Assembly (NCBI GenBank): GCA_004764695.1
Contig: SMSO01000004.1
Coordinates: 1,550,001-1,614,000, forward strand
Reading direction: 5' to 3'
DNA from: Schizochytrium sp. TIO01
Lineage: Eukaryota; Protista; Bigyra: Labyrinthulomycetes
Length of the DNA: 64,000 bases
This document shows positions 18,233 through 21,200 of the stretch, piece by piece (position 1 is the stretch's first letter; each line of letters opens with the position of its first letter). The position numbers and the translations under genes are program-made. The notes under the pieces are model-generated. The model made no database searches. It worked only from the letters and a program-made list of their open reading frames with translations, and was not told the DNA's origin.

Positions 18233-21200
18233 ATGAATCGGGATTTGCAGAACATAATCCAACTAATTGAGCAAGGAACTAAATCGATAGAGTAAGCAAC
18301 CGAAAGATGACAAATTTGTCAACGATTCAAGATGTCTGAAAGGTGAACTAACCTCATAAAAACTGTACGAAAGTCTTCAATATAAAACTTTCGGTAGTGA
18401 CAGTTTCAAGGAGCTTGCAAGCAAAATCAGTAAATGTACTAGTATTGAAGAACTGGAGTAAGTCTTCTCTCGAATGCTTCATGCTTCCATTCACATATAC
18501 ATTACACAGCTAACTTATGCACTTGCAAATTTTTGTGATTCTGGATTCACACGACTGAATATAAAACAGTTTGACTGGTTGTAGAATTGGGTCAAAAAAT
18601 GTAAAAATCTTGTCTGACGCACTGGAGAGCAATCGGTCTTTAACTTCACTGTAGTAAGTCATTTCAAGGTGTTTTCTGTTTCTGCAATATCTCAATTGAT
18701 GTACAGAAAACTCTACTTGAACAGCAGCACCATTATAATGGGAGATAATACTCACTCTTTTATTTTGAACTATCGCGTGTAGTCTTCGGCGGAATAGAAT
18801 TGATGCTTCTGGCTGCGTCAAGCTTGCAAAGTCCCTTAAAATTAGTGACTCCATAAAAACTCTGGAGTGAGTTACAGATAAGATTAAAAAAACCATACCT
18901 TCATAGATGGCTCAAGTCTAACTTATGTGGTGATGCAGTCTCTCTTTTAACGAAATCTGCGATGATGATGACGACGAAGGAGTCGGTTTGGAGGCGCTAG
19001 CTGAGCTCCTTCAAAACAATCTATCACTAGAAGATTTGAAGTAAGTCCTTATGGGAGAAAACAATCCTGCCGCTGTAACCTCTATATCAGTTTCTGCCAG
19101 AAATGAAATACTGACAGGTGATTCTCTCTCATTACTCCTATGTTTTGCGTTCAAATTGTGCTCGCAAAAGTTTATCGCACTGCAAAATTAAAAGAGGGGA
19201 TTTTGATAGTTTGTATGTTTTTTTGCAGGCGCTGATTCATAATATTTCAGTAGCCACACTAAAGTACGTTGTCAGATTCTCTTTGAAAGAGAGAACACAT
19301 CTTCTTGACTCTTGAAAACAACTCTCTCACTGCTGTTACGCATAGGCATCACTCACAAGCTTTACATCTGGGAAATTGGGAACTCTTTTTTATTTTCCGC
19401 ACTAAATATTTACATATTCAACGTAATTGGCATGCAACAGGCTGGATGACAACTCACTGGATGACAGCGATGCTGAGCAAATTGCAGAGGTTCTTTCCAG
19501 AAACCACTCGCTATTAAACCTCTCGTAAGTTAAAGCAGTTCGTACCTATAGCACTATGTTCAATAATGGAATGCATACTAACGTATGATACAATCACCTT
19601 ATTTCTAATTTGGTCCTGTATATTTTTTGCATAGACTACGAAAAAACAACATTGGACTAGGTGGTTGGACGTTTATTGGTGAAGCGCTTCAAACAAATAC
19701 GACCATTTTATACTTAGAGTACGTTTTCTTACTAGATTAGAAAGACACATTGATAATTGTTCAAATAATGAACTGGAGGCAAAGCGGATTGTATTTTCAA
19801 TCTATGGGATCTTCATGGTGATTTGTCAACTAACTTGGAATTCTCATAGTCTGATCGAGAATAGAATCGGCGACGACGGGTGCAAGGCTCTGAGTTTGAG
19901 CTTATGTGGAAGTTCAAGCTCCCTGGAGGTCCTCAAGTAAGTTAAGGAACTCGGTTTTGCTCCACTTCAGTAAACTAAGTGAGTGAAGTCCTGCTCAATA
20001 TCTTGTGATTACTAATCGTCAAATGTTACTTTATTGCACGGGGATTCTGATTTTGTAACTATGCTAATTTGGATTCTGGACTTCTTATCGTGGCTTTCAC
20101 AGGCTTGCTGAGAATGAAATTGGCTCAACTGGGATCATAGCTTTAAGCGAAGCACTTTGTACGAATAGTCACTTAAGGGTCTTGGAGTAAGTCAGTTATG
20201 CATGAGCTAAGAAGAAGAATGTTTTAAGAAAAACTAACCACTTTGCTGCTTCCCTTACTTTTCAACCTGATGATGGTCATCTTCTGTTTTTTATTTAAAA
20301 CTTTCTCAACATCGTAAACAGTCTCTCTTACAACCCAATCGGTGATGAAGGTGGCCATGCTCTAGCTGAAGCTCTTGTATCAAATAATACGTTAAAGTCC
20401 TTAACGTAAGTTCCGTAAATCCTTTTCCAAATAGAGAATCGATGCTTCTCGGCGACTAGTTAGTTACTCATGATCAATATTTGGGAGCCATGTCTAACCT
20501 AAACCAACATATTAGTCTTATCGAAATCGAAACGCAAGACATGATGGATGAAGTTTTTGCGGCTGCATTAAGCAGATGTAATCCGAATACGTTACAAGAG
20601 CTCAGGTAGGTCCCCCCCAGCTTTAACAGGGGCTTTGCTTTATTATTAAAAACGTCGCACCAGATCACTAATGCGTAACTAATGCAGGCTTTTCGAGGGG
20701 GATGAGAGCTTCACTGCTGCCCAACAAAAAATCCAAGAGAAATTATTGGAGGCGGTGCAAGATGAGCAAAAGTTTACTAGGGTTGGCCTCACTGCTCTTG
20801 AAAATGACAGACCTATTCGCTGGGGCAAAACGAAGCTTATGGTTGTGGGTAAAGCAGGGGCCGGAAAAACATCTACAGTTCGAAGTCTCCTGAAACAAGA
20901 TTATGATCCTAATCATAATACGACAATTGGCGCTGAGCTAAAAGTCACACGAACTAATTCTTGGCTTGAAAGTGAGCCATGTTCACGCTCCACTGACCTT
21001 GGAGACATTATTAGAAACATTCAGTCCAGACAAAGCGGGAGGATCATAAGTTCTTTAAGTCGTAGGACCAGTTCCAGAAGATCCTCGTCGCGCCCCGCCT
21101 CAGCGCGTCTGGCAGACCCCCCTTTTATAAAAGAAGAACTTGCTAAGGTCTTTGACCCTTGTGTGAGAAGAAGATCTCAAGAAAACAAGAAGAACATAAG

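Follow-up and report, generated by a model that had tools for sequence, protein, structure and literature searches.

A thirteen-exon LRR-Roc-COR-TIR gene with one leucine-rich repeat per exon in the thraustochytrid Schizochytrium sp. TIO01

We describe a gene that lies in a 64,000-nucleotide stretch of the Schizochytrium sp. TIO01 genome (assembly GCA_004764695.1, contig SMSO01000004.1, positions 1,550,001 to 1,614,000, forward strand), hereafter the window, whose own coordinates are used throughout. Thirteen exons of 59, 84, 84, 84, 102, 93, 84, 84, 87, 84, 84, 90 and 2533 nucleotides (nt) join into a frame of 3552 nt, or 1183 codons, with no internal stop codon, which opens with an ATG at 18233 and is preceded on its 5' side by an in-frame stop. 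Eleven consecutive exons each carry a single leucine-rich repeat (LRR), and the last encodes the predicted Roc, COR and TIR domains. Contigs from four public sequencing runs (X1 to X4) were aligned to positions 18000-23400, and together with the repeat pattern they give the following gene model.

18103..18232, + strand: 5' untranslated region; contigs start at 18103 in X1 and at 18110 in X2
18233..18291, + strand: exon 1, 59 nt; start codon, N-terminal 19 residues and 2 nt of a split codon
18374..18457, + strand: exon 2, LRR 1, 84 nt; degenerate, K replaces N
18570..18653, + strand: exon 3, LRR 2, 84 nt; from repeat pattern and transcript junctions
18783..18866, + strand: exon 4, LRR 3, 84 nt; from repeat pattern and transcript junctions
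18939..19040, + strand: exon 5, LRR 4, 102 nt; its loop carries an acidic insertion
19171..19263, + strand: exon 6, LRR 5, 93 nt; from repeat pattern and transcript junctions
19441..19524, + strand: exon 7, LRR 6, 84 nt; from repeat pattern and transcript junctions
19635..19718, + strand: exon 8, LRR 7, 84 nt; from repeat pattern and transcript junctions
19850..19936, + strand: exon 9, LRR 8, 87 nt; partial match to Pfam LRR_6
20103..20186, + strand: exon 10, LRR 9, 84 nt; LRR_6 match; first base G>A in the RNA runs, synonymous
20322..20405, + strand: exon 11, LRR 10, 84 nt; best LRR_6 match, 22.3 bits
20516..20605, + strand: exon 12, LRR 11, 90 nt; degenerate, resembling a C-terminal cap repeat
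20688..23220, + strand: exon 13, 2533 nt including the TAG stop; linker, Roc, COR-A, COR-B and TIR
23221..23262, + strand: 3' untranslated region, to the end of the X1 transcript contig

All twelve introns begin with GT and end with AG, all are in phase 2, and all interrupt the repeat at the same point, the codon for position 5 of the LxxLxLxxN motif, in the middle of the beta-strand. Their lengths run from 72 to 177 nt and their G+C content is low (0.32-0.45, in a window that averages about 46%), and 10 of the 12 hold, somewhere within them, a CT(A/G)A(C/T) motif that resembles a branch point. A sequence-only reading of the window had already pointed to this array. Its eleven exon lengths, each a multiple of three, its twelve phase-2 introns at one fixed repeat position, and its list of residue pairs following the junctions (QY, TG, RR, SF, SH, DD, RK, IE, AE, SY, IE) were all reproduced. 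It had further remarked that the track of open reading frames (ORFs) offers only junk over 18233-20687, and the sole entry there is indeed a spurious ORF of 128 residues on the minus strand.

The splicing of the array is directly supported by transcript contigs. A single 3724-nt contig from X1 extends from 18103 to 23262 and omits exactly the twelve predicted introns, so that the LRR exons are joined to the Roc exon through all twelve junctions, as had been proposed. Runs belonging to other studies confirm nine of these junctions (X2) and three of them (X4), and the first, 18291|18374, which joins exon 1 to exon 2, is present in both X1 and X2. Every junction seen in the three runs, which come from three studies, fits one and the same exon chain, with X1 alone spanning the whole of it. 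Two alignment joints are displaced by a few bases because of single-nucleotide polymorphisms (SNPs) beside the junctions (18651 G>T and 20103 G>A); the joint of exon 3, for instance, was placed at 18650 by the aligner owing to the synonymous SNP at 18651. We presume that all four runs represent RNA, a view supported by the genome, which holds array and last exon only as an intron-containing locus; for the same reason, the intron-free contigs are best read as spliced RNA. Since the spliced array is proven, the seemingly empty ORF track hides a large receptor-like protein, one that automatic annotation would miss or mis-name.

It has also been suggested, in the sequence-only reading, that exon skipping, duplication or intronic recombination could diversify this very array; taken at its strongest, this would mean that the locus is diversifying now and yields many receptor variants. 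The exons are well suited to such a process: they are symmetric, with phase 2 at both ends, and of 66 possible skip joins 62 keep the frame open, whereas four, all from exon 3, create stop codons. Similarly designed ROCO genes of brown algae have several splice variants (PMC3341825, PMC11378527). Yet while in-frame skipping is thus possible, no exon-skipping form is present in the assembled contigs of three runs, contigs of a kind that drop rare variants, and the thirteen-exon form is the one isoform assembled. Unspliced or retained introns do exist, which would speak for a more variable output: low-depth contigs of X4 keep intron 7 (19566-19634 covered) or intron 12 (20606-20687), and may be either unspliced precursors or retained introns. 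Were intron 12 retained, its 82 nt would throw the Roc exon out of frame.

The last exon holds the remaining domains, which are placed as follows.

20821..21588, + strand: Roc GTPase domain, Pfam Roc, 65.9 bits (cut-off 27)
20848-20871, + strand: P-loop, GKAGAGKT
21214-21228, + strand: DYGGQ motif
21439-21453, + strand: GTFLD motif (G4)
21691-22182, + strand: COR-A, 53.9 bits (cut-off 35.3); residues 335-498 of exon 13, directly after Roc
22243-22596, + strand: COR-B-like region, 19.2 bits (cut-off 27); in the expected place, residues 519-636 of exon 13
22771..23208, + strand: TIR domain, TIR_2, 37.5 bits (cut-off 28)

With its Roc motifs intact and COR-A directly behind them, the protein is, to judge from its domains, a member of the ROCO class. 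The residues of GKAGAGKT, DYGGQ and GTFLD are invariant among its relatives (alignment A3), and no NACHT or NB-ARC domain was matched by Pfam in exon 13, where the only hit of this kind is a sub-threshold AAA_22 over the Roc P-loop. We note that a low-complexity insert rich in Ser and Arg lies within Roc at about 20990-21140, between the P-loop (G1) and switch II; it is missing from the Pfam Roc model, and the Roc match is split into two stretches. In the TIR domain, the codon GAA at 23011-23013 encodes a putative catalytic glutamate that is invariant in ten paralogues. A profile of these ten TIR sequences matches SARM1, TIR-1 of C. elegans and AbTIR, with E values of 2e-6 to 1e-4 for structures of TIR enzymes that cleave NAD+ (NADases); a search of the PDB with the TIR region as a single sequence gave no match. 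The glutamate aligns with that of the bacterial TIR 7uwg and with that of the WVHKE stretch of SARM1, which we take to be the catalytic residue there. The TIR domain accordingly keeps a glutamate of the catalytic type and is putatively of the NADase type.

The eleven exon peptides, which give repeats of 28-34 residues from exons of 84-102 nt, share the consensus LxxNxIGxxGxxxLAxALxxNxSLxxL and belong to the ribonuclease-inhibitor (RI) class of LRR. They are mutually about 27% identical on average, the lowest value in the family described below, and those of exons 2, 6 and 12 are degenerate. The residue pairs listed above had been offered as a sign of diversification, in that exposed residues differ between repeats while the scaffold is kept. 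The differences are real, but they do not speak for diversification, since they are normal in an old LRR domain with this level of identity. No further LRR exons were found elsewhere in the 64-kb window.

The gene does not stand alone in its genome, an assembly of 37 contigs that totals 64 Mb. A search with the last exon brings up about 26 ROC-COR(-TIR) loci, roughly 16 of them full-length paralogues with about 42% identity and some 10 more distant ones at 30-35%, which bears out the expectation of a multi-copy family. For the paralogues L002-L025, the 1.4-1.5 kb on the 5' side of the Roc exon were scanned with a profile of the exons described here, and all loci contain exons of 84 nt (rarely 81 or 87), flanked by AG and GT, in phase 2 and starting with L-x-x-N-x-I-G. 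As phase-2 single-LRR exons occur in all testable paralogues, the architecture of one LRR per exon is shared by the whole family and is ancestral to it. A quick maximum-likelihood tree unites the copies of this genome in one clade (SH-aLRT 96) beside a separate clade from Hondaea; the gene of the window sits on a long branch (1.19) at the poorly resolved base of the clade of its own species. A metagenome scan with a Roc-COR-TIR profile returned six short contigs, which have scant upstream DNA or contiguous LRRs (cDNA-like or unrelated).

Many members of the family are found less than 100 kb from the start of a contig, and a few have stop codons. Identical or near-identical paralogues (L009/L010/L011, L021/L022 and L005/L016) are found on different contigs or contig ends, at sites that include C7:1.03 Mb, C8:67 kb and C7:37 kb, as well as C14:80 kb and C31:34 kb, a distribution suggestive of segmental duplication or of exchange among the ends of chromosomes. 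In L023, L029 and L016+L027 there is an internal stop (TAA, TGA), or Roc-COR and TIR are in separate frames, and these broken members suggest gene birth and death within the family.

Such losses raise the question of whether the gene of the window is itself a relic that is decaying into a pseudogene. In favour of this, no other member of the family is as diverged, three of its repeats are degenerate, and stop codons occur in other members. Against this, 1183 codons stay open across twelve splice junctions, the gene is expressed in three studies, and all the GTPase motifs are kept, as is the TIR glutamate. The four runs, moreover, share twelve coding differences from the assembly, of which eight are synonymous and four non-synonymous. 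Together these observations lead us to give the relic hypothesis almost no credence.

It is in the sister genes that the cassettes are seen to be active. In the main clade (L002-L006, L008-L014 and L016), an exon and an intron of about 300 nt form a tandem unit of about 385 nt. A search of the genome with one such 385-nt unit recovers it, 92-96% identical, at no fewer than 390 places, in arrays whose longest have about 16-17 units; this count is a lower bound, with 29 of 115 candidates scored. In L004, which is built of 385-nt tandem units, two adjacent ones (L004:494-1263, G000:C34:2809565-2810334) are 100% identical, which points to a very recent tandem duplication. The introns of 25 complete units have a median identity of 0.94, rising to 0.98 within a gene. 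The exons combine this homogeneity with sharply localized variation. Most cassette alignments start at bases 8-17 of the unit, so that the first codons do not align, and among 41 distinct exons the amino-acid entropy reaches 3.1 bits at codon 2 and 2.8 bits at both codon 3 and codon 5, with the split codon also highly varied and most scaffold codons at or below 0.5 bits. In the 25 complete units, nucleotide diversity (pi) is 0.59 at the eleven bases of these hypervariable codons, compared with 0.08 at the other exon positions and 0.10 in introns (Mann-Whitney p = 3e-9). These hypervariable codons correspond to repeat positions 5, 7, 8 and 10, which presumably face the concave side of the LRR. 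In the sister genes, then, duplication and homogenisation of cassettes proceed alongside preserved diversity at positions 5, 7, 8 and 10.

Some long arrays were found without a Roc-COR-TIR exon (C36:2319541-2325693, C5:1793854-1797303, C3:2298316-2302934 and C13:4064717-4071306). These must be either LRR-only genes or genes with other C-terminal domains; no IBR or kinase domain was found beside the listed cassette arrays in a search of the same genome in which 142 of 411 kinase candidates were scored.

The gene of the window presents a very different picture. A genome search with its 2455-nt array recovered the array itself and nothing more, with no orphan or donor copies of its exons elsewhere. 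Its introns share no detectable similarity with one another. Tandem Repeats Finder detected no tandem repeats in 13848-23400, units of 366-529 bp such as those of the LORE-TEARS discussed below included, and a repeat search within the gene gave only chance-level matches of 15-35 nt at splice sites and LRR motifs. In the paralogues, positional counterparts of its LRR exons are not detectable with units of 27 residues, and no recent exon relatives were found. It is a single locus inside a chromosome contig, unlike many of its paralogues at contig ends. Between strains, the variation that might have been expected in the LRR exons comes to two SNPs, both synonymous, and the gene looks to be under purifying selection. 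We conclude that it is a diverged, static and old member of the family, with no sign of current shuffling. The proposal of shuffling and diversification therefore stands for the sister genes, with their tandem cassettes, very recent duplication and hypervariable binding-face codons, and is not supported for the gene on which it was based. That this array is itself diversifying now is improbable: it offers no intragenic DNA similarity to sustain unequal recombination and no donor copies elsewhere, its exons are conserved between strains, and the assembled contigs hold one isoform.

Both neighbours of the gene are single ORFs. The one at 9534-13847 has 1437 residues and, from its sequence, is one that we take to be an ABC transporter; the other, of 502 residues at 23583-25091 on the minus strand, is a convergent gene for a signal peptide peptidase (Pfam Peptidase_A22B). 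Open frames of at least 200 codons cover 58% of the window. These figures agree, as a loose check, with the earlier statement that the other genes modelled here have no intron or one, and they suggest a genome poor in introns, to the extent that open-frame density and two intronless neighbours can indicate it; in the literature we found nothing on introns per gene in Aurantiochytrium. Upstream of the gene, the 4.4 kb at 13848-18232 contain no ORF of at least 100 codons, no Rfam family and no tandem repeat, an odd gap where long open frames make up so much of the sequence. This region may serve as an extended promoter, or it may contain a non-coding transcript or a gene with several introns that has escaped annotation. 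Rfam gave no match on the gene itself. At the other end, the convergent neighbour is covered in X3 and X4 by high-depth contigs (depth 120-149; the ROCO gene has 2-5) that extend as far as 22652 or 22823, antisense to the TIR-coding end, and the two genes may thus form a natural antisense overlap.

How did a gene in such surroundings come to have twelve introns? We posit that they would go back to a single intron copied together with its exon by tandem duplication, rather than to twelve separate gains. The sister genes still duplicate exon-plus-intron units today, and those of the present gene diverged long ago. As to what the protein does, we suggest a chain of three steps in which the concave face of the LRR domain would bind a ligand, foreign or endogenous; binding would alter the Roc-COR switch, either in its nucleotide state or in its oligomeric state; and TIR domains would thereby be brought together to cleave NAD+, making a signal or depleting NAD+. 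Such a protein would be a ROCO-based analogue of the TIR-NLR sensors. A function as sensor, switch and effector is what we infer from the domains, and an immune role may follow from it.

On a plainer reading, the protein does ordinary ROCO signalling and takes no part in non-self recognition; its LRRs would bind a conserved cellular partner, and its intron array would be a relic of repeat growth. ROCO proteins of Dictyostelium and of animals have non-immune roles. The gene is single, old and apparently under purifying selection, and it lies among housekeeping neighbours inside a chromosome contig, unlike the many paralogues near contig ends. However, its closest relatives belong to a family that has expanded within the lineage and whose concave-face codons are hypervariable, as is typical of defence proteins, and the same is true of a TIR domain with a glutamate of the catalytic type; TIR enzymes of diverse protists make signals of the cyclic ADP-ribose (cADPR) type. 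On balance we regard the signalling reading as unlikely, though it deserves serious consideration.

We consider it probable, instead, that the gene is an intact and expressed thirteen-exon LRR-Roc-COR-TIR gene, a static old member that retains the ancestral architecture of its family, with a predicted function as sensor, switch and effector. Several points weigh against this interpretation. The COR-B-like region scores under its Pfam cut-off. When Pfam LRR_6 is searched exon by exon, three exons match, at 14.9-22.3 bits, below the cut-off of 23.4; the matches of single exons cover profile positions 10-24 only, and we attribute the low scores to the intron, which cuts the profile so that each exon holds only part of the model. 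Minor skipping isoforms may escape contig assemblies, a strain divergence of about 0.2% makes for a weak test of LRR variation, and the basal place of the gene is uncertain given the quick tree and the long branch. Finally, ROCO proteins are usually described as dimeric switches, which leaves the assembly of TIR domains by Roc-COR unexplained.

We would go one step further, and only tentatively. The LRR-Roc-COR-TIR family might possibly be, in a unicellular stramenopile, a GTPase-switched functional counterpart of TIR-NLR immunity, with a germline repertoire that would grow through the copying of exon-plus-intron cassettes and stay diverse at the binding-face codons alone, and in which the gene of the window would be a conserved, non-diversifying member. 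If so, it could act within the repertoire as a helper, say, or as the sensor for a ligand that does not vary, and plausible targets of the repertoire would be the herpes-like or mirus-like viruses known from such hosts. Apart from any such role, the long-diverged array of this gene and the homogenised 385-nt units of the sister genes make up a natural series in which to follow the multiplication of introns by tandem duplication, and to set concerted evolution against diversifying selection on one and the same repeat.

We found no account in the literature of thraustochytrid LRR, TIR or ROCO receptors, nor of genes of this family in labyrinthulomycetes. The nearest named relatives are LRR_6-Roc-COR-TIR proteins of Hondaea fermentalgiana, 35-38% identical over Roc-COR-TIR, several of which (P0002, P0003, P0005, P0008 and P0009) have been named automatically as "LRRK2", "NOD2" or "NLRP1". 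The full-length ones carry PF13516. They have the same architecture and, as in the sister genes, near-identical repeats with variable x positions, but form a separate, species-specific clade. Another possible connection within the thraustochytrids is to the LORE-TEARS of Aurantiochytrium limacinum, tandem units of 366-529 bp in up to about 22 repeats, homogenised across chromosome ends (10.1101/2023.06.15.545109). They are described as subtelomeric spacers without similarity in GenBank, and LRRs are not mentioned in that account (10.1101/2023.06.15.545109). In a comparison by description only, their unit size fits the sister-gene cassettes of about 385 nt; the gene of the window, by contrast, is no tandem repeat.

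The closest parallel outside this group is with the LRR-ROCO genes of the brown algae Ectocarpus and Saccharina, in which 72-bp exons each encode a single LRR of 23-24 residues (Zambounis et al. 2012, PMC3341825; Teng et al. 2024, PMC11378527). This precedent and that of the vertebrate NOD/NLRC genes had both been cited accurately in the sequence-only reading. The algal genes likewise combine LRR, Roc and COR in a stramenopile, with symmetric exons that hold one LRR each and keep to a single phase, and they share with the thraustochytrid family a species-specific expansion, duplication or shuffling of exons, and variable sites on the concave face. The differences are nonetheless clear. The exon border lies outside the LxxLxLxxN core in brown algae and inside the beta-strand here; the exons here have 84 nt and encode RI-type repeats of 28 residues; the algal proteins lack a TIR effector; and the gene of the window shows no recent shuffling. 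The hosts differ as well, intron-rich and multicellular in the one case, a unicellular heterotroph with few introns in the other. In a protist with few introns, a full-length transcript thus joins eleven exons of one LRR each to a Roc-COR-TIR exon. Together with its sister genes, the gene extends the exon-per-LRR ROCO design, known only from brown algae, to a distant unicellular heterotrophic stramenopile, and adds to it a putative TIR enzyme as effector.

In the human NOD/NLRC genes, each exon encodes one LRR of 28 residues and ends within the beta-sheet (Hoss et al. 2019, PMC6642158). The likeness to the thraustochytrid exons is close, in that both have RI-type repeats of this length in frame-preserving exons with the border at a constant place in the beta-sheet. 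The vertebrate proteins, however, pair a NACHT ATPase switch with CARD or PYD effectors, where the gene described here has Roc-COR and TIR. The resemblance is probably convergent and implies no homology of introns, so that the vertebrate design would have been reached independently. The variable lymphocyte receptors of lampreys, which are assembled somatically by copying that resembles gene conversion, also use LRR cassettes as units of diversification and vary on the concave face, but there is no indication of somatic rearrangement in the thraustochytrid family.

With respect to its effector, the gene invites comparison with plant TIR-NLRs, SARM1 and bacterial TIR NADases, which likewise unite sensor repeats, a nucleotide switch and TIR. 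TIR domains of many diverse protists give cADPR-type products in a glutamate-dependent manner, according to a preprint that has LRR, Roc and COR among the abbreviations given in the legend to its figure of domain architectures. What sets the present gene apart from the TIR-NLRs is the switch, a STAND ATPase in those proteins and a Ras-like GTPase with COR in this one, and the order of its parts, in which the LRRs come first, the switch second and the TIR domain, the putative enzyme, last.

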